Assembly (NCBI GenBank): GCA_026770705.1
Contig: JANJGN010000004.1
Location: 173,166,001 to 173,230,000 of the forward strand
Source: Isurus oxyrinchus
Lineage: Eukaryota
DNA: 64,000 nucleotides
Direction of reading: 5' to 3'
A program made the position numbers and the translations under genes. This document shows positions 1 to 61,555 of this stretch, one piece after another; the first letter of the stretch is position 1, and each line of letters starts with the position of its first letter. The notes beneath the pieces were generated by a model that was not told the origin of the DNA, searched no databases, and worked only from the letters and a program-made list of their open reading frames with translations.

Positions 1-97
1 AATAATGAGAGGAAATTATTCATACAATGGAAATTATAGCTGCTGTGTTGGTCCGTGTTTTATTCTCAACGTAAACTCTTGTAGATGTGCATGTTGT

Positions 98-497
98 GTG
101 GGGAAATGGTTATGTAGTGGTAATGTTGCTGGGCGAGCAATCTAGAGGCCCAGGCTAATCCCCTGGGGACATGGGTTTGAATCCCACAAAGGCAGTTGGT
201 GGAATATAAATCCAATCAATTTATCTGGAATATCAAGCTAGTTGATGACCATGACAATTATCAGTGATTGTTGTAAAAACCTTTCTGATTCACTCATGTC
301 CTTTAGGGAAGGAAACCTGCCATCCCTTACCTGGTCTGGCCTACATGTTACCGACAGACCCTCAACAATGTGGTTGACTCTTAACTGCTCTCTGAAATGA
401 CCTAGCAAGCCACTCAGTTCAGGGGCAATTAAGGATGAGCAACAAATGCCGGACTTGACAGAGATGCCCAAATGCCATGAAAGAATAAAGAAAATAA
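98..497 (+). mobile_element. tRNA-headed SINE (family sharing 5' and 3' ends with the LINE at 21350-24575), long-body variant
   Basis: A-box-like TTATGTAGTGG and B-box GGTTTGAATCC; body ATGTCCTTTAGGGAAGGAAACCTGCC...CTAGCAAGCCACTCAGTT; tail GGGCAATTAAGGATGAGCAACAAATGC... ending A-rich. Confidence 0.85.
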
Positions 498-5232: not shown

Positions 5233-5413
5233 CCACGTTTAGCTGAACATGTGGAAATTCCTATTTGATTCTCTTAATGCTCTTAGCCTCACCATTATAC
5301 TCAAAGCAAAACCTGAGCGCTTGTGTTTCATATTAATTCAATCTGAGGCAACCTTTACTGTATTTTCTACAATTTTGTTGATGATATTACCATTTATATG
5401 ACAATGCAGAAAA

Positions 5414-5779
5414 TTGCCAAGGTATGACCTATCCACAAAAAAGCATGGCAAATCCAATCTGGCCAATTACTATCCCATCAGTCTACTCTCAATCATGAGT
5501 AAAGTGATGGAAGGTGTTAATTACAATACTATCAAGTGGCACTTACGCAATAATAACCTGCTCACCGATGCTCAGTTTAGCTTCTGCCAGGGCCACTCAG
5601 CTCCTGACCTCATTACAGCCTTTGTCTGAACATGGTCAAAAGAGCTAAATTCAGAAGGTGAATTGAGAGTGATTGCCCTTGAATTCAAGATTTGACCGAA
5701 TGTGGCATCAAGGAGCCTAACTGACATGAAGACAATAGGAATCAGGCAGAAAACTCTGCATTTGTTGGAGTCACACCTA
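5414..5779 (+). mobile_element. Fragment of the tRNA-headed LINE family (RT N-terminal part); continues at 9243
   Basis: KSNLANYYPISLLSIMSKVMEG...LTDAQFSFCQGHSAPDLITA, homologous to 22531-22854. It breaks at GAGTCACACCTA and resumes at CAAAGGAAG. Confidence 0.85.
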
Positions 5780-8700
5780 TGTTATGGTCAGGAGGGAGTT
5801 TAATTTAAACAGCCCTGATTTCTCCTCTCACCACAACATCATAGAATTCTTCCTTAGGTTGGGAAGTGAAGTAGTCCAATTCAAATCTAGGGTCCTAAAG
5901 GACAGTGGTAATGTAAAGGGCAGAGAGGGCAAAAGTTCTTCGATTGTGCTCAGGAAAATTTTCTACAGCATTATCTGTCCAATCCAACAAAACAATATGC
6001 ACTCCTGGACCTGGTTCTTGGAAATGAGGTGGTTCCAAGTAGACCAAAGGTTAGTGGGGGAACATTTAGGAGACAGTGATCATTGTATTATATGCTTTAG
6101 GATGATGATAGAAAAGGACTATAGACAATCCAGAATAAGGATACTGAACTGGATGAGAGCCAAATTTGAGGGGGAAAGAATGGAGCTGGGTCAGATAGAC
6201 GGGAATGAAAGATTGGTGGGAAAAGCTGTAGCTGAGCAATGGGCTACCTTCAAAAAAGAATTGATTCTGGCACAGTCAAGGTATATTCCATCGAAAGGGA
6301 AAGGTAGGGCAAATAAATCCATAGTTCCCTAGATAAAAAAGAAGATAAAAATTTAGATAAAGAAGAAAAAGTGTGCTTATGACAAGTGTCAGTTAGAAAA
6401 TACAATGAGAATCAAGAGGAATACAGAAGGTTGAAAGTGGAGGTGAAAAAGCATATTAGAGAAGCAAGGAGGGATTATGAGAAAAGACTGGCAGCCAACA
6501 TAGAGGGGAATCTCAAAGTCTCCTATAGGCATATAAAAAGTAAAAAGATGGTAAAAGGAGGAGTATGGCTGAGTAGAGACCTAAAAGGGAATTTACACAT
6601 GGATGAAGAGGCCATAGCAGAGGTATTAATATTTTGCATCCATCTTTACCTAAGAGGTAGATGCTACCCAGACCATGGTGACAGATGAGGAGACTCTGTC
6701 AGTAGAAGGGTTCAAAATTGATAAGGAGGGAGTGTTGAATAGACCGTTGGTACTTAAATTTGACAAGGCACTGGGACCGGATGAGATGCATCCAAGGATA
6801 TTGAAGGAAGTGAGAATAGAAATTGCAAGGGTACTGGCCATAATTTTTCAGTCTTCCCTAAACTAAAGGGAGGTGCCAGAGGACTGGAGAATTGCAAACA
6901 TTACACCCTTGTTCAAAAAATGTTGTAAGGATAAGCCCAGCAATTATAGACCAGTCAGCTTAACTTCAGTGCTCGGCAAGATTCTAGAAACAATTATTCA
7001 GGATAGAATTAGTACTCACATGGTAAAATATGGGCTGATAAGGAAGGCACAGCATGGGTTTCTAAAGGGGAAATACTTGCTGGAGTTTTTTGAACAGGTA
7101 ACAGAAAAGGACAATGAGGGTAATGTTGTTGATATAATGTACATGGACTTTCAAAAGGCATTTGATACAGTTCCACACAACAAACGTGTGAGAAAAATTA
7201 TTGCTCATGGAATGAAAGGGACTGTAGCAACATGGATACAAAATTGGCTGCAAAATAGGAATCAGAGAGTAATGGTCAACGGATATTTTTCAGCTGGGGG
7301 ATGGTTTACACTGCAGTTTCCCAGGGGTCGGTATTGGAACACTTGCTTTTCCTGATATATATTAATGATCTAGATTTTGGTGTACAGGGGACAATTTCAA
7401 AGTTTGTGGATGATATGAAGCTTGAGAGTGTTGTGTGCTGTGAGGAGATAAGTGTAGAACTACTAAAGGACATAAACAAGTTGGTGGAGTGGGCAGATAG
7501 GTGGCAGATGAAGTTCAATGTGGAGAAGTGTGAGGTGATGCATTTTGCTAGGAAGAACATGGACAGACAATATAAAATAAGGGGTGAAATTTTGAAGGGA
7601 GTGCAGGAGTAGAAAGACCTGTGTATATATGTGCTTGGATCATTGAAGGAGGCAGGACAGGTGAAGACTGCAGTTAATAAAGCATATAGTATCCTCAGCT
7701 TTATTAATAGGGGCATAGAGTAGAAGAGCAAGGAGGTTATGCTGAATTAATATAAAACATTCATTAGACCTCAGCTGGAGTATTGTGTACAGTTCTGGGC
7801 GCCACATTATAGGAAGAATGTGAACAGATTGGAGAGAGTGCAGAAGATGTTTACAAGAATGGTTCCAGGATGAGAAACTTCAGCTTTGAGGATAGATTGG
7901 AGAGGTTGGGACTGTTCTCTTGCAGAGAAGAAGGCTAAGAGGAGATTTGATAGAGATGTTCAAGATCATGAGGGAGCTGCACAGAGTAGATAGGGAGAAG
8001 CTCTTCCTGCCTGTAAAAGGATCAAGAACGAACGACACAGATTTAAAGCAATTTACAAAAGTAGCAAATGTGATGTGAGAAAAAATCATTTTCACACAGC
8101 GAGTGGTTCATGTCTGGAATGCACTGCCTGGAAGAGTGGTGGAGGCATTCAAGAGGGCATTCAATCATTATTTGAATAGAAACAATGTGCAGGGGTGCAG
8201 GAAAAAGACAGGCAACGGCACTAGATCATAATGCTCATTTGGATAGCCAGTGCTGATGTAAAGGGCTGAATGGCCTCCCTCAGTGCCATTAAAATTCTGT
8301 GATTCTGTAGCCATTCAGTTTATCTCTACCCGCTCTGCTCCACTACCCATTAAGGCATCCTTTGGGGGGCTACTCATATGGAGCTGTAAAAGGCCAATTG
8401 GATTGTACACAATCTCCAGCACTAAGGGAGGGGGAGCATTGCTGTGTTACCATTGTACATTCATACAATAAAATAGAGAAAGAAGGAGGTACAGGGCAAA
8501 GACTAGAGAGAAAATAAGTAATGTTTCATGTGAGTCCAGAATCAAAAGTCCAATGGTGTATTCCTTCCTAGAGATCAGCAGACTGAACCTGACACTGGAT
8601 AATCCACCTTTCAAGTAGAGATGACTTCTACAATGAGATGGATATGTAGAGATGAATTAGACTTGTAAGCACTGGTACAGGAGTTCCATTGAAATCAGTG

Positions 8701-9240
8701 TGGATGGGGCCAGGCATTCATTTGGTCTGAGCCTTGTTCTGAGCTGCTTGCTAGAAGGAAGATGGCAATCTTCTTAATAGCTCCACAAGGCAGGTAACGT
8801 CCTCCCCCATCTGGAGGGGGTCATGTGACATAACTCCCACTTCTCCACTTTTGTTTGAAAAAGCAAGTATACTCCTTTGTCTGAATTCTCGAGATGGTTA
8901 ATGTTTCAATCATTAATAATTTCAGAAGAGATTTTGGGGTTCTTTGTCCAAACAAGCTTCCATCTCTGTTGGCCAGGCTTTGGCCTTAGGAATGTACATG
9001 GTCCTTGTACAATTCCCTTGGATTTGATCTCTGCAGTCACAGGGATCATTAGCGGCTCTATAAAGATAATGAGGTGGCAGCTGTTCTGAATGCCAGGAAG
9101 CTCATTTTGTTTGAACCATAGCCAGTCATGGTTTCAGTCATTTTAAAAATATTGTCCGGTTTTTAAGATTTTATAAATTAGCCATGCTGATACATATGTA
9201 ATAAAAATATGGAGTGAGGTCTTAGCCCACTGACAATTAA
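5780..9240 (-). mobile_element. LTR (family A), antisense, inserted in the LINE and itself interrupted by a CR1
   Basis: 5780-5833 is the reverse complement of the family A LTR end. GGGGTCATGTGAC (about 8818) and 9020-9060 match 4541 and 3625-3660 in reverse. The host LINE resumes right after. Confidence 0.6.
5890..8310 (+). mobile_element. CR1 LINE, 5'-truncated ORF2 (endonuclease C-terminus plus RT) with 3' UTR
   Basis: Frameshifted peptides HLGDSDH, KALGPDEMHPRILKE, PEDWRIANITPLFKK, NYRPVSLTS, YMDFQKAFD, SQGSVL...YINDLD, KFVDD; tail ATTCTGTGATTCTGT. Confidence 0.95.
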
Positions 9241-9242
9241 CA

Positions 9243-10160
9243 CAAAGGAAGTTGGTTGTGATTGTTGGAGGTCAATCATGTCAGCCCCAGGCCATTGTTG
9301 CAATAGTCCCTCAGTGTAATGTCCTAGGTCCAACCATCTTCAGCTACTTCACAGTTGACCTTCCCTTTGTTATAAGCCCAGAAGTGGGTTTGTTCGCTGA
9401 TGGTTGTACAATGTTCAGCACTGTTCACTGCTGTTCATACTGAAGGAGTCCATTTCCATGTACAAGACCCAGACAACATTCAGGCTTGGGCAGATAAGTG
9501 GCAAACAACATTCATGTCACACAAGTTCCAGGCAATGACGATCTCCAATAAGAGAGAATCTAATCAACTCCCCTTGACATTACTATCACTGAATATGCCA
9601 CCATCAAAATCTGGGGGCTTGCCATTGACCTGCAATGTATTTTGACCAGCCATATAAGTACTGTGGCTACAAGAGCTGGTTTAGAGGCTGGGAATTCTGT
9701 GGTAATTAACTGAAGTCTCTGATAACTCACCTCCTGACTTCCCATCACCTACAAGGCACAGGTCAGGAATGTGATGGAATACGCTCCACTTGCCTGGATG
9801 ACTGCAACTCAAGAAGCTTGGCATCATCCAGAATAAAGCAGCTTCCTTGATCGGCCCATCATCCACTACCTTAAACATTCCCTCCACTGATCACAGTGAC
9901 AATAATGGCTCATCAAGCTTCCTTTGGACAGCACCTTCCAAACCCGTGACCTCTACCACCTAAATGACAAGGGCAGCAGGGAACACCACGACTGCAAGTT
10001 TCCCTCCAAGCCAGACACCTGACTTGGACCTATATCTCTGGTGCTTCACTGTCACTGGGTCAAAATTTTGGAGGTCCCTTCCTAACAGTACTGTGGGTGC
10101 ACCTACACCAGATAGGCTGCAGCAGTTCAGGAAGGTAGCTCACCAACACCTTCTAAAGGC
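9243..10160 (+). mobile_element. Continuation of the tRNA-headed LINE fragment (RT core to near the 3' end)
   Basis: VVIVGGQ...VPQCNVLGPTIFS...FADGCTMFST, DNIQAWADKWQ, homologous to 54075-55278 and 21400-22400. Confidence 0.85.
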
Positions 10161-15049: not shown

Positions 15050-16160
15050 TCCTACAGCCAGTGCTCCAACCTACCAGAAACATTTGGTTTGGTCATGAGG
15101 GGCTGACCCAGGGAGTCATCATTCCGGACCCCATGAAGTCTCTTGGCATCAGGTCAAATAGAAACACGGGCAAGGGAACCTCCTGCTCATTATCAGCTAC
15201 TGTCAATCTTCAGCTAACGAATCAGTGCTGCTTCATGTTGAACATCACTTGGAAGAAGCACTGAGTGCAGCAAAGGCATAGAATCTGGGTCCAGGACTTC
15301 AATGCCCATCACTAACGGGTGCCTCAGTAGCACCACTAATGACTGAGGTGTCTGACTCTTGAAGGGCATATTTGCCAGACTGGGCCTGCAGCAAGTGATG
15401 AGAGAACCAACAAGAGGGAAAACCCTACTCGACCTTATCCTCATCAATCCACCTGCTGTAAATGCATCTTTCCATGACAGAATTGGTAGAAGTGACCACA
15501 CAGTGGAGACCAAGTCCCGTCTTCACACTGAGGTCAGGTGGTGTGCCACTACCACTGTGCCAAATAGAATAGATTCAGAATAGCTTTAGCAGTTCATGAG
15601 GTGCTGTGGGCCATCAGCAGCAGAATGGATTTCAAATCTGTTAGCTCTCATATCTCTCAGTCTATCATTACCATCAGGCCAGAAAACCAACTTGGCTCAA
15701 TGAAGACTATGGCAGAGCATGCCAGGTATACCTAATAATGGAACGTGAGCCTAGTTACGCTACAACACAGGGCTACATGCATAAACAGCCTAACAGCACT
15801 GTGGGTGTATCTACACCACATGGATTGCAGTGGTTCAAGAAGGCAGCTCTCCACCACCTTCTCAATGGCAACTAGGGATGGGCAATAAATGCTGGCCCAG
15901 CCAGTGAAGCCCACATCCCATGAATTATTTTTAAAAAACAGAGGAAACAACATGCTATAGAGCTAAGCAATGCCACAACCAATGAATCAGATCCACATTC
16001 TGCAGTCCAGGCATGAATGGTGGTGGACAATTAAGTAACCAACTAGAGGAGAAGACTCAAGTAACATTCTCACCTTCAATGATGGGGGAGCCCAGTATAT
16101 CAGTGCAAAAGACAAGGCTGAAACATTTGCAACTACCTTCAGCTAGAAGTGTCGAGGGGC
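15050..16160 (+). mobile_element. Old fragment of the tRNA-headed LINE (APE region and linker) with a nested 3' tail of the same family at about 15790-15937
   Basis: LGLQQVMREPTRGKTLLDLIL...GRSDH (APE C-terminal motif); the insert carries the GGCAACTAGGGATGGGCAATAAATGCTGGCCCAGCC tail. Confidence 0.8.
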
Positions 16161-17349: not shown

Positions 17350-17720
17350 GAGGAGGTGGTGGCCCAGTGGTATTGTCACTGGACTAGTATTCCTAAGACC
17401 CAGGGTAATTCTCTGGGGACCTGGGTTCAAACCCCACCACGGCAGATGGTAAAATTTCAAATCAATAAAAATCAGGAATTAAAAATCTGGTGATGACCAT
17501 GAACCATTGCCAATTGTTGTAAAAAACCCATCTGGTTCACTAACATCCCTTGAGGGAAGGACCTCTGCTGCCCCTACGTGGTCTGACCCACATGTGACTC
17601 CAAGCCCACAGCAATGTGGTGGGCTCTTAAATGCCCTCCGAACAGGGCAATTAGGGATAGGCAATAAACGCTGGCCTAGCCAGTGACGCCCACATCCCAT
17701 GAACAAATTTAAAAAAAAAC
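17350..17720 (+). mobile_element. tRNA-headed SINE (short-body variant) inserted in Tx1 unit 1
   Basis: A-box TGGCCCAGTGG, B-box GGTTCAAACCC, shared body and tail, ends in poly-A. Confidence 0.9.
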
Positions 17721-19650: not shown

Positions 19651-21349
19651 TATTTATGGTGGGATATATAAAACACGGACTCCTCAAGGCCACAGAAAAT
19701 ACAGGTGGCCTGGGAGTCCATGAACCATCTTAGCCTTCTCTTGCAAGGCACTGCTACATGCAACATGCTTTACGCCATGTCCCCGATGGAAAATGGGAGG
19801 ACTCCCATGTGAGGAGCCCTTCACTGGGAACCCCTTCCACTTCCAGACAACAGGACACAATGCCACAGTGCGTCTGAACAATTGACGATGATGAGGAAGT
19901 GAATGGTATGCAGCAGCAGCCTACACAGGAAATCCCTCCATGCAGAAAGGAAAGGCTGGAGGGAATTTCCACAAGATGGCTCAAATTGTCTGGCCCAGGT
20001 CCTTAGGGAGGTGTTGGTACATGGGGCCAATGTGAAATTTAAGTCTCTCTTTGTATGTGCTCAAGGTACTTAATCAATCAATGCCCTTCACCTGTGTATT
20101 CTTAACCCTAATAATACAAAATATACCATTAACAATAAGCAATGCTCTACAAGAGGGAATTAAACCTCCAAATATGTAAATATTGCCCAGTGCACACTAC
20201 ATATCAGAAGTCACTAGGAATGGAGGTGTACAGTGGCAAGGAGGGAAAGAGAAAATTTGAAATTCCACACCTAACAGAACTTTGGCAGCGGGCCTATTCT
20301 CCATAATTAATGACTCACTAGCAAAATCACATTTTAAGAGACTTCATGCTTCAAAGTTATATATTCCCAATGTTGTCTTTACAGACATTTTCTTCTGTTA
20401 AATGGATTTCCCCTCTTGGACTATCTCATACATTTGAAGAAAAAAAGTGAACACAGAAATGTTGTAGGTTAGCCTTAATGGGTTACAGCTATTAAGTTGG
20501 GAATTAAGAAGTGCTTAAACCTACCTAAATCTTTGGGAGAGTTGAAACCCTGGTGTCCATTCAAGATTTTAACAGGTTAAAAAACTCAAGAATTTGCCAC
20601 ACTTATACACAATAGAAGGTAACTATCGTTAACCCCTCAAATTTGATTACTTTGGAAGATTCAAAGTAGTATTCTCTAGCTTTTGATTGCTTCACATTAT
20701 TGACATTGTAAAGGTGAATACCAATTGATTTTGCTTGCTACTTCAATCAGAATATAGGTTGCAAATTTGATTATTCTTCTTAATTATCTTGAGAACATTG
20801 TAGTCAGGGATTCACAACAATTTGAAATCAATGCACTTGATTATTTGCAGCTAAGGTTTCATTCAAAGAAGTTTCAATATCTGTGTCTGGTTCATTAAGA
20901 TATTTGATGTCCCCATGGTCTAAGGTCTGCGTAATGTGGGTTAGTTTGTCAACGTCTGCAACACTTACGTATTTTTTTAATACTGACTGCAGGGTCTTAA
21001 GCTGATGATCTGTCCCTGCAGTTTAACTGACTCTGCTCAAACTTGCTTCACTGACTTAGTTATCGATCTGTGTCTAAAGAACTAAAAATCTCCAACACTT
21101 CCTCAGAATGGAATCCCTGAATAAGTCTACCTAACATAATTGACCAATTATTGTGTGGTGAATTATCAAATAATCTATTCATTATATAAAATTTACAGTG
21201 CACAGGCCATTTGGTCCAGCTGGTCTATGTTCATCTTTATGCTCCAAAACAGCCTCGTCCCACTCTATCCAACACTATCAACATGTCCTTAATCCTTATC
21301 CAAGATCCCTTATATTCATATGGTGGTGGTGTGTTACAGTTCACTCAGG

Positions 21350-24300
21350 GAGTCTTTTTTCATTCATTCAGGGGTTGTGGGCTTCACTGGCTGGGCCAGC
21401 ATTTATTGCAGCTTCTCTAGTTGCCCTTGTGAAGCTGGTGGTGAGCTGCCTTCTAGAACCTCTGCAGTCCATGTGGTGCGGTACATCCACAGTTTTGTTA
21501 GGAACGGAGTTCCAGGGTTTTGACCCGGCGACAGTGAAGGAACGGCGATATATTTCCAAGTCAGGATGGTGAGTGACTTGGAAGGAAACTTCCAGGTGGT
21601 GGTGCTCCCATCAATCTGCTGCCCTTGTCCTTCTAGGTGGCAGAGTTTGCAGGTTTGGAAGAGGCTGTTGAAGGAGCTTTGGTGAATTCTCGCAGTGCAT
21701 CTTGTAGATGGTATACATGCTACCACTGTGTGTTGGTGGTGGAAGGAGTGAATGTTTCTGGATGTGGTGCCAGTCAAGTGGGCTGCTTCATCCTGGACAG
21801 TGTCAAGTTTCTTGATTGTTGTGGGAACTGCCCTCTTCCAAACAAGTGGGGAGTATTCCATCACACTCCTGATTTGTGCCTTAGAGATGGTGGACGGGAT
21901 TTGGGAGTCAGGAAGTGAATTACTTGTCTCATGATTCCTGGCCTCTGACCTGCTCTTGTAGCCACAGAATTTATATGGCTGGTTCAGTTCAATTTCTGGT
22001 CAACGGTAACCACCAGGATGTTGATAGTGGGGGATTCAGTGATCGTAGTGCCATTGAACGTCAAGGGGCGATGTTTGGATTCTCTCTTGTTGGAGATGGT
22101 CATTGCCTGACACTTGTGTGGCATGAATATTATTTGCCATTTGCCAGCATAAGCCTGGATATTGTCCAGGTCTTGTTGCATTTGGACATAGACTGCTTCA
22201 GTATATGAGGAATCACAAATGGTGCTGAACATTGTGCAATCATCAGTGAACATCCCCAGTTCTGACCTTATGATGGAAGGAAGGTTACTGATGAAGCAGC
22301 TGAAGGTTGGGCTGAGGACACTACGCTGAGGAACTACTGCAGTGATGTCCTTGAGCTGAGGTGACTAACCTCCAACAACCACAACCATCTCCCTTTGTGC
22401 TAGGCATGACTCCAACCAGCAGAGAGCTTTCCCCCGGGATTTCCATTGACTCCAGTCTTGCGAGGGCTCCTTGTTACCACACTCGGTCAAATGCTGCCTT
22501 GATGTCAAGGGCAGTCACTCTCACCTCTTCTCAGGAGTTCAGCTCTTTTCTCCATGTTTGAACCAGGGCAGTAATGAGGTCAGGAGTTAGGTGAACCTGG
22601 CGGAATCCAAGTTGAGCATCAGTGAGCTGGTTATTGCTAAACAAGTGCTGCTTGATAGCACTATTGATGACCCCTTCCATTACTTTACTGATGATCAAGA
22701 GTAGGCTGATGGGGTGGTTTTTCAACAGGTTGGATTTGTCCTGTTTCTGTGTACAGGATATATCTGGGCAATTTTCCACATTGCCAGGGAGATGCCAGTG
22801 TTGTAACTGTACTGGAACAGCTTGGCGAGAGGTGCGGCAAGTTTTGGAGCACAAGTCTTCAGTATTATTGCCGTAATATTGTCAGGGTCCAAAGCCTTTG
22901 CAGTTTCCAGTGCCTTCAGCAGTTTCTTGATAGCAGGTTGGGTGAATAGAATTGCCTGAAGACTGGCATCTGTGATGCTGGGGACCTCGGGAGGAGGCCA
23001 AGATGTATCATCCACTCGGCACATCTGGCTGAAGATTGTTGCAAATGCTTCAGCCTTATCTTTTGCACTGAGGTGGTGGGCTCCTCCATCATTGAGGATG
23101 GGGATATTTTTGGAGCCTTCTCCTCCTCTAGTGAGTTGTTAAATTGTCCATCACCATTTACAACTGGATGTGGCAGGACTGCAGAGCTTAGCTCTGATCC
23201 GTTGCTTGTGGAATCGCTTAGTTCTGCCCATCACTTGCTGCTTATGCTGTTTGGCGTGCAAGTAGACCGGTGTTATAGCTTCACCAGGTTGACACCTCAT
23301 TTGTAGGTATGCCTGGTGCTGCTCCTGGCATGCCCTCCTGCACTCTTCATTGAACCAGAGTTAATCCCCTGGCTTGATGGTAATGGTAGAGTGAGGGATA
23401 TGCTAGGCCATGAGGTTACAGATTGTGTTTGAATACAATTCTGCTGCTGACCCACCGAGCCTCATGGATGCCTAGTCTTGAGTTGCTAGATCTGTTCAAA
23501 ATCTATCCCATTTAGCACAGTGGTAATGCCACACAACACAATGGAGGGTGTCCTCCCATGGAAGGCAGGACTTCATCTCCACAACAACTGTGCAGCGGTC
23601 ACTCCTGATGCATCTGCGGCAGGCAGGTTGGTGAGGATGAGTTCAATTATTGTTTTCTCTCTTATTGGTTCCCTCACCACCTGCCACAGACCCAGTCTAA
23701 CAGCTATGTCATTTAGGACTGGACCAGCTCAGTCAGCAGTGGTGCTACTGAGCCACTTTTGGTGATGGGCATTGACGTTTCCCACCCAGAGTCCATTCTG
23801 CACCCTTGCCCCCCTCAGTGCTTCCTCTAAGTGGTGTTCAACATGGAAGGGCACTGATTCATCAGCTGAGGGAGGAGGGTATATGGTAATCAGCAGCAGT
23901 TTTTCTTGCCCATGTTTGACCCCATGAGACTTCATGGGGTCTGGAGTTGATGTTGAGGACTTCCAGGGGAACTCCCTCCCGACTGTACACTACTAAGCTG
24001 CCACTTCTGCTGGTGGGACAGGACATAACCAGGGATGGTGATGGCAGTGTTTGGGACATTATCTGTAGGGTATGATTCCATGAGGATGACTATGTCAGGC
24101 TTTTGCTTGACCAGTCTGTGAGACAGCTCTCTCAATTTTGGCACTAGCCCCCGGATGTTAGTAACGAGGACTTTGAAAGTCAATAGAGTTGCATTGTCGT
24201 TTCTGGTGCCTAGCTCAATGCCAGGTGGTCCGTCTTGTTTCATTCTATTTTTTCTGACGTTGTAGCGGTTTGTTACAACTGAGTGGCTTGCTAGGCCGTT

Positions 24301-24575
24301 TCAGAGTTAATCACATTGCTGCGGATCTGGAGTCACATGTAGGCCAGACCAGGTAAGGACGACAGATTTCCTCCCCTAAAGGGCATTAGTGAACCAGATG
24401 GGTTTTTACAACAATTGAAAATGGTTCCATGATCATTATTAGATTTTTAATTGCAGATTTTTATTGAATTTAAATTCCACAATCTGCCATTGTGGGATTC
24501 GAACCTGGGTCCCCAGAGCATTACCCTGGGTCTCAGAATTACTAATCCAGTGACAATATCACTACATCATCGCTT
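21350..24575 (-). mobile_element. Near full-length single-ORF APE-RT LINE (CR1/L2 group) with a tRNA-derived 5' head; decayed by frameshifts
   Basis: ATG at 24243: MKQDGPPG...VLVTNIRGLVPKL...KPDIVILMES (APE). Then CAPKLAAPLAKLFQYSY, PISLLLIISKVMEG, MFTDDCTMF, MEYSPLVW, and the 3' tail CAATAAATGCTGGCCCAGCC...TGAATGAATGAAAAAA. B-box GGTTCGAATCC at 24495-24505. Confidence 0.9.
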
Positions 24576-24829
24576 CAACATGCGACATACACTTTTACAT
24601 GCATGTTGTCCTCTGGAGCTTTCCATCGATAATGATGTTAGAGGCTCCAGTGTTCTTCCTATCACAAGGCTGACCTGAAATCTCTTCTGCTCTTAGTGTC
24701 TGACATTGGCAGGTGTTGAAAGGATTTGCAGATTTATGCTCAACCTGTTAGGCCATGTTATGAATGCACCTTCCTTGGTCATCGAGTCCTGGGGTTGGAC
24801 TCAAACTCAGAGCTTCTGGCTCAGAGGCT

Positions 24830-46085: not shown

Positions 46086-47724
46086 GCAGGCGATGCAATC
46101 ATCACTCGGGAACTCATCAAGTTTTTTTTTAAGGGAGCTACACTTACAATACGCCAGAGCTATTTAAGTATTTTACCTGCATTGGCAATAAAGGGACAAA
46201 AGTGGTTTCTAAATAAGATTACATTTAGAATTTGGCAGTCTGGAACTATTTTAGTAGCCCAGGATTAATGTGCAACTATGACAATGGCCTTCTAAATTTT
46301 AATGTGCTATTTTAAATTATCCTCATTTTAGTTACATTCCCTTCCAGCACTGAAATATGATTAAGGTGGTTCAAATTCAAGACACTTATTCCACTTTGAT
46401 TTCAACATTTATTGGAAGAAAAGCAGGCCTGATAATTATGAATGAGCTATGAACTCTGAAATTATCATTCTCCTCAGAATACAAATATTTAGTCCAGTCT
46501 GGAGCCAACCAGTAACACAATAAGATTTGTTTGTTACAAATCATAGCTGCCTAATTAGACAGGCTTTGTGTGAAGCCATCTATCCACATCCAGCTGATGC
46601 CACAGATGTTATGCGCAGGCAGAAGTCAGTCAATCGCCTCAGGCTTTATTTGGTCTAGTGCTGTGTCACACTGACATGGATAATTTAATAGCTATAATCA
46701 CTTCTGTAAAATGAGATGACACTATAAAATTGCACCCAAGACACAAATATTAACCCTCCAGGCCAATGGCATTTGTCTAGAATCAATAAACAAACTAATT
46801 TTGACATTACAAACTTGTTTCTTCTTCCCTGTGACTGGAATAGCAACTTAGTGTGAGATTCACAAGGTGACTAACATCCTTACATGAAGCCAAGTTGGTT
46901 GATTTTGTAACCAAAAATCTGTGCTCTCCTTATTCATACTTGACCAATCACTTGTCTTTCTGTCCCCAAATTATTAAATCTAACATATCACATTCTCAAT
47001 CAATGTCATATTCTCGGCCCCCTCCTTTTTCCTTATTTACAAGTTGCATCCTTAACATTATTCACAGACATAGAAATCAAATCCCTATTCACCGATTCCA
47101 TTCTCCACCTGGCCACTGTCTCAGGCTGAACCTAAGCGTTCATAACCTATTTGAACTTCAGCTGAGCTTCCAAACCCATACCCTCTCTATCACCATGACT
47201 GCCTACTTCCCCCACCATCAAAGCTAATTGTCTCCGACCTGCCTCAGTCCATTGGCTGCTCATATCTCATCAGCACTCTTCTTACCTCCAAACCCAACTA
47301 CTCAAATGTCCTCCTGGTTGGCCTCCCATTTCCCACAGCATATAAACTTTGAACTCATCTGAAACTCTACTGCTCACATTTCAACTTGCATTAAGTTCTG
47401 CTAACCCATCATCCTGGTGTTCATAGACCTACATTGCCTCAATTTTAAGGTGATATTAGGACAGGTGACTAAAAGTTTAGCTAAAGAGGTAAGTTTTCAG
47501 GTAGGTCTTAGAAGGAGGGGGGAAAACAAAAAAAGCAACAGTATGTTATCCAGGACAAAGCAACTCGCTTGATTGGCACCCCATCCACCACCTTAAATAT
47601 TCACTCCCTCCACTACCAATGAACAGTGGCAGCAGTCTTTACTATCTACAAGCTACTCATCAAGGTTCCTTTGACAGCACCCTCCAAAATCACGACCTCT
47701 AAAACCTGCAAGGAAAAGGGAGCA

Positions 47725-49110
47725 CATGCATGAGAATATGCAGAAATGGCAGACGCTTAATCAATATTTTGCCTCAGTTTTCACAGTGGAAGACACTAGT
47801 ACCACCCCAATAGTAGCAGGTTGTGCAGAGGATATAGAGAAGGAACATAGAACAATCACCATCACTAGAGAAAAAGTACTGAGCAAACTATTGGGATTAA
47901 AGGGTGACAAGTCCCTAAGACTTGATGGCCTACATCCCAGGGTCTTAAAGGAAGTGACAGCAATGGCTATAATATTCCAAAATTCCCGAGATTCTGGAAA
48001 GGTTCCACTGGATTGTAAAAATGCTAATATAACGCCCTCATTCAAGAAGTGGGTGGGGGGGGGGTGGTTGCAGAAGGTAGGAAACTATAAACCAGTTAGT
48101 TTAACGTCTGTCACTGGGGAATTGTTGGAATCTATTATTAAGGAAGTAGTAATGGGACATTTGGAAATTCAAAATGCAATCCATCAGAGTCAGCATGGTT
48201 TTATGAAGAGTTAATCATGTTTGACTAATTTGCTAGAGTTCTTTGAAGATGTGACAAGCAAAGTGGATAATGGGGATCATGAGGATGTAGTATATTTGGA
48301 CTTCCAGAAGGCTTTTGATAAGGTGTTGCACAAAAGATTAGTACACAAGATAAGTTCACATGGAGTTAGGAGTAATATATTAGCTTGGATAGAGGATTGG
48401 CTAGCCAACAGAAAGCAGAGAGTTGAGATAAATGGGTCTTTTTCTGGATGGCAAGCTGTGACTAGTGGGGTGCCACAGGGTTCAGTCCTTGGGCTCCAAC
48501 TATTTACAATCTATATTAATGACTTGGATTCAGGGATAGAAGGTACTATAGCTAAATTTGCAGATGACACCAAAATAGGTGAGAAAGTAAGTTGCAAGGG
48601 AGAAATAAGAAATTTACAAATGGATATGGACAGCTTAGGTGAATGGGCCAAAATTTGGCAGATGGAGTTTAACATGGATATGTGTGAGGTTATCCACTTT
48701 GGCCAGAAGAATGGAGAGAAACTTCAGAATGCTTCAGTGCAGAGGGATCTGTGTCCTCCTGAATGAATTGCTGAAAACTAGTATGCAGGTACAGCAGGTA
48801 TTAAGGAAGGCAAATGGAATTTTGGCATTTATTGTTAAAGGAATAGAGTATAAAAAAATGTAAGTGTTGTTGCAACCCAGAGAGCGGTGAGCCTGTGGAA
48901 TTCACTACCACAGAAAGTAGTTGAGGCCAAAACATTGTATGTTTTTAAGAAGGAGTTAGGTATAGCTCTTGGGGCAAAAGGGATCAAAGGATATGGGGAG
49001 AAAGCGGGAGCAGGCTATTGAATTGGATGATTAGCCATGATCATGATGAATGGCGGAGCAGGCTTAAAGTGCTGAACGACCTACTCCTGCTCCTATTTTC
49101 TATGTTTTTA
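47725..49110 (+). mobile_element. CR1 ORF2 fragment with an internal deletion and 3' UTR
   Basis: LNQYFASVFT, DGLHPRVLKEV, YLDFQKAFDKV, SGVPQGSVLG, KFADDTKIG; sequence jumps at about 48875. Confidence 0.92.
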
Positions 49111-49596: not shown

Positions 49597-49870
49597 GGAG
49601 GTGGTGGCACAGTGGTATTGTCACTGGACTAATAATCCAGAGAACCACGGTAATGCTCTAGGGACTTGTGTTTGAATCCCACCATTGCAGATAGTGAAAT
49701 TTGAATTCAATAAAAATATGGAACAAATCTGACAATGAAACCGTTGCCAATTGTCGTAAAAACCCATCTAGTTCATTAATGGCCTTTAGAGAAGAACATC
49801 TGCTGCCCTTACCTGGGCAATAAATGCTAGCCTAGCCAGCAATGCCCACATCCCATGAATTAATAAAAAA
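49597..49870 (+). mobile_element. tRNA-headed SINE, variant with a larger internal deletion
   Basis: A-box TGGCACAGTGG, B-box TGTTTGAATCC; the body joins the tail directly at CCCTTACCTGG|GCAATAAATGC. Confidence 0.85.
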
Positions 49871-50077
49871 ATATAGCTGGAGGGGTACCATTCTGTCCCA
49901 AGCATGGGGCAAGGCAAGAAGGCAGCTCACCCTGAACTACTTGTACAGGGATTGGCCATTTTCTAGCCATCTAAGCTAACTGACACACACATGAAAATCA
50001 GGGAAGAAGGGTTACTAACACCTGACTTCCGATATACAATAATTATTTCCACTTTTCAAGAAGGGTGATAAATCAAA

Positions 50078-54074: not shown

Positions 54075-55278
54075 TAATTTTTTTATTCATCAATGGGATA
54101 TGGGCGTCACTGGCTATACCAGCATTTATTGGCCATCACTAATTGCCCTGAGAAGGAGGTGGTGAGCTGTCCTCTTGAGCCCCTGCAGTCCATGTAGTGG
54201 AGGTACACTCACCGTGCTGTTAGGAGGAGAGTTCCAGGATTTTGACCCAGCAACAATGAAGGAACAATGATATAGTTCCAAGTCAGGATGGTGAAAGGCT
54301 TGGAGAGGAACATCCAGGTGGTGATATTCCCATCTCTCTGCTGCCCTTGCCCTTCTACATGGTAGCAGTCATGGGTTTGGAAGGTGCTGTCTAAGGAGGC
54401 TTGGTGAGTTCCTGCAGTGCATCTTGTAGATGGTACACACTTCTTTGGTGGTGGAGGGAGTGAACATTTGTGGATGGGGTGCCAAATCAAGCGGGCTGCT
54501 TTGCCCTGCATGGTGTCAAGCTTCTTGGTTGTTGCGGGAGCTGTGATCATCCAGGCAAATGGAAAGTATTCCATCACACTCCTGACTTTTGCTTTGTAGA
54601 TGGTGGACAAGCTTTGGGGAATCAGGAGGTAAATTACTTGCCACAGGATTCCTAGCCTCTGACCTGTTCTTGTAGCCACAGTACTCAAAGGGCTAGTCAA
54701 GTTCAGTTTCTGGTCAATGTATCCCCCAAGATGTTGATAGTGGGAGATTCAGCAATGGTAATGCCATTGAATGTCAAGGGGCGATGGTTAGATTCTCTCT
54801 TGTTGGAGATGGTCATTGCCTGGCACTTGTGTGTCGTGAATGTTACTTTCCACTTGTCAGCCCAGGCCTGGATATTGTCCAGGCCTTGCTGCATTTAGAC
54901 ATAGACTGCTTCAGTATCTGAGGAGTTGTGAATGGTGCTGAACATTGTGCAATCATCAGCAAATATCTCCACTTCTGACCTTATGATGGAAGGAAGGTCA
55001 TTGATGAAGCAGCTGAAGATGGTTGGGCCGAGGACACCACCCTGAGGAACTCCTGCAATGATATTCTGGAACTGAGATGCTGACCTCCAACAACCACAAC
55101 CATCTTCCTTTGTGCTAGGTATGACTCCAACCAGCGGAGAGTTTTCCCCTTGATTCCCATTGACTCTATCCTTGCTAGAGCTCCTTGATGCCACGCTAGG
55201 TGAAATGCTGCCTTGATGTCAAGGGCAATCACTCTCACCTCACCTCTGGAGTTCAGCTCTTTTCCCCATGTTTGAGCA
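54075..55278 (-). mobile_element. 5'-truncated copy of the tRNA-headed LINE family (RT to 3' tail)
   Basis: RVIALDIKAAF, AGVPQGGVLGPTIFSCFINDLP, IFADDCTMF, DNIQAWADKW, RSVMEYFP; shared tail. Confidence 0.92.
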
Positions 55279-61196: not shown

Positions 61197-61555
61197 GGGA
61201 GGCAGTGACATCGTGGTATTGTCACTGGACTAGTAACCCAGAGACTCAGGGTAATGCATTGGGAGTCTGGGTTTGAATCCCACCGCAGCAGATGGTGGAA
61301 CTTGAATTCGATAAACATTTGGAATTAAAAGTCTGATGATGGCCTCAAAACCATTGCCAATTGTTGTAAAAATCCACCTGGTTCACAAATGTCCTTTAGG
61401 GAAGGAAATCTGCTGTCCTTACCTGGTCTGGCCTACATGTGACTCATGACTGACAGCAATAAGGTTGACTCATAAATTGCCCTCTGAACAATTAGGGATG
61501 GAGATAAAGGCTGACCTCGCTGGACCCATATCCCATGAACAAATAAAAAAAAAAT
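61197..61555 (+). mobile_element. tRNA-headed SINE (short-body variant)
   Basis: Head GGCAGTGACATCGTGGTATTG...GGTTTGAATCCC, shared body, tail and poly-A. Confidence 0.88.

Follow-up and report, generated by a model that had tools for sequence, protein, structure and literature searches.

The described systems closest to the element considered here are pairs of long and short interspersed nuclear elements (LINEs and SINEs) of cartilaginous fishes, HE1/HER1 and SacSINE1 with an L2- or CR1-like LINE, in which a tRNA-derived SINE has a tail equal to the 3′ end of its partner LINE. HE1/HER1 and SacSINE1/CR1-4_DR-like have been tabulated as LINE/SINE pairs (Ohshima 2013, PMC3747384), and the presence of SacSINE1 in Rhincodon typus, with a tail of the L2-2_CM type, is recorded by Luchetti (2017, PMC5499810). 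By their descriptions, as far as these go, the LINE of such a pair provides the tail only. In contrast, the element of this study, which lies on the minus strand of a 64,000-nt stretch of Isurus oxyrinchus DNA (NCBI GenBank assembly GCA_026770705.1, contig JANJGN010000004.1, positions 173,166,001 to 173,230,000 of the forward strand; the whole stretch is called the window, and all coordinates refer to it), is a LINE that also carries the head and the body of the SINE. With its SINE it forms a variant of the known LINE/SINE pairs, one in which both head and tail are shared, and it is probably a full-length copy, old and dead, from a LINE family in which the tRNA-derived head and the body of the partner SINE make up the 5′ untranslated region (UTR). 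The element may be of SacSINE1 type.

Parts at both the 5′ and the 3′ side that are common to the short element and the LINE have been described for Bov-tA/Bov-B, RIME/Ingi and the Vingi derivatives (PMC5786205), and a further likeness of these systems to the present one lies in their several deletion-type junctions. As they are presented there, the small-RNA head is on the SINE only, whereas here a tRNA-like head stands on the LINE itself. In that survey's treatment of the matter, LINE 5′ parts within SINE bodies are attributed to RTE and Vingi only, and the origin of the conserved bodies is given as unknown (Kojima 2018, PMC5786205). No description of a tRNA-headed LINE was found in the literature searched, and a prior description may exist in a repeat library such as Repbase or Dfam.

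Layout and boundaries of the composite element

The composite element (Table 1) is 3221 nt long and reads, in order, tRNA-like head, SINE body of about 220 nt, linker, ATG, decayed coding sequence of about 2.85 kb and tail. The original prediction, made from the sequence alone, had proposed a LINE with a tRNA-derived head fused directly to a single frame for an endonuclease and a reverse transcriptase (RT), without a first open reading frame (ORF1), and this layout, with a head of SINE or tRNA type, is supported by our analysis. The perfect B box, GGTTCGAATCC, was found in the place reported for it, at 24505-24495 on the minus strand, and an A-box-like motif, TGATGTAGTGA, at 24569-24559 on the same strand has three mismatches to the A-box consensus TRGCNNAGTGG. 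From the start of the element to the ATG at 24243 we measured 332 nt, in agreement with the earlier figure of about 330 nt. Inspection of the element sequence between the head and this ATG revealed neither a SINE tail nor poly-A and left no room for an ORF1, as had been claimed.

The tRNA likeness of the head proposed earlier lies in the B box and the degenerate A-box-like motif; a tRNA call was obtained for the target head from neither ARAGORN nor Rfam. An Rfam scan of head and leader at E ≤ 10 returned no tRNA or ribozyme family and four matches at chance level only, and at gathering scores Rfam had no match in the whole window. ARAGORN made a single tRNA call in the window (49598-49689, 92 nt, tRNA-Ile with anticodon aat), which falls on the head of a SINE copy and not on a tRNA gene; with the Rfam tRNA model this head reached 16.2 bits, below the gathering score of 29. 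Canonical A boxes are present in the SINE copies at 17366 and 49611.

The leader, correct in the extent given earlier, is not anonymous sequence: its identity is that of a SINE body. When the window was compared with itself by blastn, 24599-24277 matched six other short elements at 74-85% identity (80-419, 17366-17637, 19643-19480, 49611-49816, 58761-58501 and 61213-61471). The leader is the 5′ three-quarters of this abundant SINE, and the SINE and the LINE share the 5′ part and the tail: four of the SINE copies end in LINE positions 2814-2889, the last ~75 nt, at 78-84% identity (blastn and alignment). The SINE thus has the layout of the LINE minus its reading frame. The SINE-like part of the target ends at 24277, and its last ~23 nt (~24299-24277) are common only to the SINE subtype at 80-419. 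A likeness of this 23-nt segment to the 3′ end of the LINE is suggested by eye in the alignment and is too short to decide the matter. The junctions between body and tail are of three different types among the six SINEs, with more among the contigs aligned to the locus. In the shared tail a small hairpin, GCTGGCC/AGCCAGC, is predicted with seven pairs, no compensatory change and no covariation support, from ten input sequences of which two (61408-61472 and 350-416) are not tails.

At 3221 nt and with an RT frame, the composite is neither short nor non-coding, as a SINE2 is held to be, and it is not a SINE. The original prediction had described an open frame for an apurinic/apyrimidinic-type endonuclease (APE) and RT starting from the ATG at 24243. 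Of this the RT is borne out by Pfam, where RVT_1 matched 22364-21987 with 30.2 bits (cut-off 29.6) and 22881-22534 with 18 bits, and the endonuclease is supported indirectly. None of four N-terminal pieces matched any Pfam family, endonuclease included, at E ≤ 0.01, and in five of six distant homologues scanned (P0011, P0017, P0018, P0012 and P0023; not P0024) Exo_endo_phos lies exactly at the place to which the N-terminal piece aligns, which suggests the same assignment for the N-terminus here. The frame itself is not open: stop codons leave no stretch longer than 198 codons, and the path of homology shifts repeatedly among all three frames. Intact coding capacity is absent and the copy is dead, and the description as an APE-RT element with no ORF1 holds for a dead copy.

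The bounds of the element were taken from a second, moderately repeated sequence, here called R, in which it is inserted. Contigs of two DNA sets and two putative RNA sets were aligned on 21250-24750 at 80% likeness; all are assembled contigs, 9,439 to 343,663 of them aligned per set, and statements on single contigs are made among the 31 records listed. Homology to R runs up to 21354 and resumes from 24576. In contigs of the sets X15 and X16 that lack the element, the sequence passes from ~21346 by way of 22-32 other letters to 24585-24592, and in one contig from 21346 to 24690. The insertion site lacks about 13 nt of R and shows no target-site duplication, and the insertion is bounded on one side by the first base of the SINE head and on the other by the final A of the LINE tail. 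These contigs, few and with short sides, give moderate support to the insertion of the element as one unit, from the start of the head to the end of the tail. Single contigs from two organisms (X2 and X14) span 24509/24512-24750 with one and five differences over ~240 nt. Since contigs from two organisms span the junction between head and flank, this junction is not an assembly artefact, and since it is present in both, the insertion is old and predates their split. No other copy of R was found in the window. High-depth contigs of R without the element are present in both putative RNA sets. A coral metatranscriptome run (X20) holds 6% of the sampled words of this stretch.

Table 1. Coordinates of the composite element, of the repeat around it and of related copies in the window
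Feature	Position	Strand	Basis or remark
Whole composite element	21355..24575	-	bounds from flanking-repeat contigs without the element; 5′ end agrees with SINE starts in the window
tRNA-like head	24495..24575	-	degenerate A-box-like motif and perfect B box
SINE body	24277..24494	-	blastn, 74-85% identity to six SINE copies in the window
LINE-specific linker, 33 nt	24244..24276	-	in none of the six SINEs in the window; between SINE-like part and ATG
Decayed single reading frame	21371..24243	-	APE N-terminus (assigned indirectly) from ATG 24243; RT ~22881-21987; C-terminal part enters the tail
3′ tail common to LINE and SINEs	21355..21430	-	ends TGAATGAATG and an A run; blastn and alignment
Upstream flank, part of repeat R	24576..24750	.	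depth ~50 times that of the single-locus contig; contigs without the element
Downstream flank, repeat R resumes	21250..21354	.	contigs without the element
SINE copy, subtype keeping the 23-nt segment ahead of the tail	80..419	+	blastn, alignment
SINE copy with head, body and LINE tail	17366..17715	+	blastn, alignment
SINE copy with shorter body-tail junction; head is the ARAGORN tRNA call	49598..49871	+	ARAGORN, blastn, alignment, Rfam
Second LINE copy, 5′-truncated, LINE positions 1683-2889	54078..55275	-	82.1% identity over 1215 nt; no run of four or more T

Recurrence of the junction in other copies

The original prediction had asked whether the element is a one-off chimera, and the answer comes from homologous proteins in which the junction of SINE, linker and ATG recurs. 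An exhaustive HMMER search with a 103-residue N-terminal piece gave 28 proteins, the close ones being short gene-model fragments, and two word-index searches added five proteins. Four of the four homologous models that start at this place (P0003, P0005, P0007 and P0032) do so at the same Met as the ATG at 24243. Seven close homologues have residues upstream of the Met position. In P0002 and P0030, compared with the three frames of 24600-24100, the reading continues unbroken from the end of the SINE-like part across the linker and into the Met region. P0006 consists of translated B box and body joined to the endonuclease, with residues 32-69 placed by tblastn on 24376-24275, and the N-terminus of P0001 is translated SINE body, likewise joined to the endonuclease. 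All four of these informative proteins are EukProt models of Rhincodon typus. The other three (P0009, P0013 and P0022) have host-like exons joined to a truncated LINE from residue 43-45; these whale-shark-like models may reflect either repeated use of a cryptic splice acceptor within the LINE or an artefact of annotation, and one of the host-like exons resembles, by eye, a PDZ domain.

The contigs add that the linker is multi-copy in both DNA sets, where at position 24259 at least 119 contigs of X2 and at least 104 of X14 have T instead of the G of the window. The junction is constant in at least three copies from two genomes, which supports its inheritance in other copies. With the same junction in P0002 and P0030, and a compatible one in P0006 and P0001, the element is not a one-off chimera by the test that the original prediction had set, and the SINE-headed layout is very probably a feature of the family.

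Several points weigh against this conclusion. The only 5′-complete copy seen as DNA is that of the window, and the internal junction of SINE and linker at 24277 is spanned by none of the contig pieces listed. P0006 and P0001 may contain predicted introns, in which case their SINE and LINE parts are perhaps not adjacent, and they are counted here only as compatible. The evidence from contigs without the element is moderate, being drawn from few contigs, aligned at 80% likeness, with short sides. Protein-guided scans of contigs (metagenome contigs with an alignment and with P0008, viral contigs and genome contigs) found no relative.

Within the window, the 3′ part of the LINE is shared by 5′-truncated fragments at 55275-54078, 5399-5779 with 9238-10159, 15123-16159, 46076-45933 and 47549-47735, and none of these five is preceded by a SINE body. 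The pieces 5399-5779 and 9238-10159 correspond to the consecutive LINE positions 1458-1843 and 1842-2819 and look like parts of a single copy with an insert of ~3.46 kb between them; the insert holds another LINE with RT-like open reading frames on the plus strand (5784-8310). The fragment at 15123-16159 is an older copy of 66-74% identity. A 137-nt piece at 15789-15925, with 86% identity to the LINE tail, interrupts this older copy and looks like the nested insertion of a tail-only copy.

Transcription of the family and competing explanations

A LINE has to keep its promoter through copying, and little is known about how LINEs gain new promoters; the heads of SINEs are textbook internal promoters. 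Because the junction is constant it is inherited, and hence the RNA that is copied would have to begin at or before the first base of the head; the insertion boundary at that very base points to a start right there. With an internal promoter in the head, which fixes the start at a point upstream of the promoter, the template RNA would begin at position +1 of the SINE, and no other simple arrangement would retain the head from one round of copying to the next. The RT of the family, working in cis or in trans, would recognise the tail that LINE and SINE have in common. As to the polymerase, we tentatively suggest, at somewhat less than an even chance, that RNA polymerase III (Pol III) may make the full-length template RNA. 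In favour of Pol III, the classic internal promoter that sets an upstream start is the pair of A and B boxes found in tRNA-type units. The element resembles type-2 Pol III units, such as tRNA genes and tRNA-derived SINEs, in having a B box and an A-box-like motif ~50 nt apart at its extreme 5′ end, and differs from them in that the unit here would be ~3.2 kb long and protein-coding. No natural protein-coding Pol III unit of ~3.2 kb was found in the literature searched.

Transcription by Pol III has to be weighed against the nine ATGs that lie upstream of the coding sequence within the 332-nt leader, against the degenerate A box of the target copy, and against the fact that Pol III products have neither a cap nor a poly-A tail. 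The protein could alternatively be supplied by other transcripts or by other copies, and the composite would then move in trans by way of the tail that it shares with the SINEs, in the same manner as these.

A further point against Pol III concerns runs of four or more T on the sense strand, which are no fewer than the dinucleotide composition predicts. The counts of the original prediction (two in the target, none in the second copy and about ten in a neighbouring LINE) were reproduced: the target has two, at 24421-24418 and 23501-23498, copy 2 (55275-54078) has none, and the neighbouring LINE has ten on its sense (plus) strand. Its interpretation, selection against oligo-T, is not supported, since the count equals the expectation at the dinucleotide level, an outcome that the prediction itself had named as speaking against it. 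In dinucleotide-preserving shuffles, the target with its two runs compares with a mean of 3.4 ± 1.6 (29% of shuffles had two or fewer), copy 2 with none compares with 2.0 (8% of shuffles), the fragment at 9238 with two compares with 2.5, and the fragment at 15123 with one compares with 0.9; the sum of the four is five against 8.8, and no single difference is significant. Mononucleotide shuffles gave 5.9 for the target (P = 0.058) and, for five fragments pooled, which are homologous, overlapping and pseudo-replicated, 14.4 against five observed (P = 0.003). For TT, the observed/expected ratio is 0.82 in the target as against 1.12 in the neighbouring LINE, with AA at expectation in both, and the contrast in T-runs between the two is largely compositional. 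Both runs of the target are private to it, the first being present in none of the six SINE copies and the second being replaced by ATTCAG in the one other copy that covers it. What remains is a weak trend towards a mild sense-strand deficit, which on decayed copies is inseparable from coding or compositional bias.

The same data bear on the best-surviving alternative, somewhat unlikely in our view, that the SINE-headed family is read by RNA polymerase II (Pol II). The captured SINE module would then be an internal promoter or enhancer, or simply part of a UTR, the long transcript would owe nothing to the A and B boxes, and the low number of T-runs would be the ordinary sense-strand composition of a LINE. 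The agreement of the T-run count with dinucleotide shuffles and the degenerate A box of the target copy are as this explanation expects, and so is the protein-coding nature of the element, LINEs being described as Pol II units (Kojima 2018, PMC5786205). On the other hand, the head would be inherited only if Pol II started exactly at the SINE's own first base; the boundary at 24575 matches the starts of the SINE copies. The upstream ATGs do not distinguish the routes, being as awkward for cap-dependent scanning as for the others.

Explanations without a headed family are, taken together, unlikely. One of them, which we consider improbable, is that of a single event, either the landing of a LINE beside or inside a resident SINE or a switch of the RT from LINE RNA to SINE RNA. 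Chimeric retrocopies formed by template switching are indeed known, as two accounts relate (PMC7245038, PMC5499810), and the window has a single 5′-complete copy. The U6-L1-type chimeric retrocopies resemble our element in having the sequence of a small Pol III RNA fused 5′ to a LINE, and they differ in that their junctions are variable and arise in single events, whereas here the junction is constant. A single event also sits poorly with the same junction in two whale-shark models and a compatible one in two more, with the multi-copy linker, and with the lack of a SINE tail downstream of the LINE.

It is still less probable that the LINE homes into resident SINEs, by a site-specific endonuclease or by target-primed reverse transcription primed through tail homology, with the head never co-transcribed: priming by the shared tail would leave a single tail, as observed, but truncated copies would then also be expected behind a SINE body, where none of the five fragments lies, and the constant 5′ junction would need an identical nick position each time. 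Target-specific LINEs of the Tx1 type in tRNA or small-RNA arrays likewise stand directly behind a tRNA-like sequence; in the present case the sequence downstream is repeat R, with no remainder of a target, and the truncated copies are not in SINEs.

Origin of the shared parts and significance

For a LINE family headed by its partner SINE, the origin of the shared parts could be either of two kinds. A LINE may have captured the head and body of a SINE, through template switching at the cDNA's 5′ end for instance, or the SINE subtypes may have arisen from the headed LINE by internal deletion; the several types of body-tail junction fit both capture and deletion. A simpler course, read-through of a SINE followed head-to-tail by a LINE, would make the linker a decayed SINE tail. 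Its best local score, 16, where shuffles average 18.0 (P = 0.86), indicates that it is not one, which leaves such a tandem origin unsupported.

A LINE family with the whole head and body of a SINE bears on the origin of the conserved SINE bodies, and a SINE-headed LINE bears on whether the requirement for ORF1 is set by the polymerase. RNAs made by Pol III were reported to retrotranspose without the ORF1 protein in cultured human cells (Kroutter 2009, PMC2666806). The fuller reading, that the very abundant SINE is the internal-deletion form of the LINE and that the polymerase rather than ORF1 sets the route of retrotransposition, we regard as doubtful; if the SINE is indeed a deletion form of the LINE, the conserved SINE body would gain a LINE-borne home. 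Since the family is abundant, both the origin of the bodies and the dependence of the ORF1 requirement on the polymerase are directly testable.

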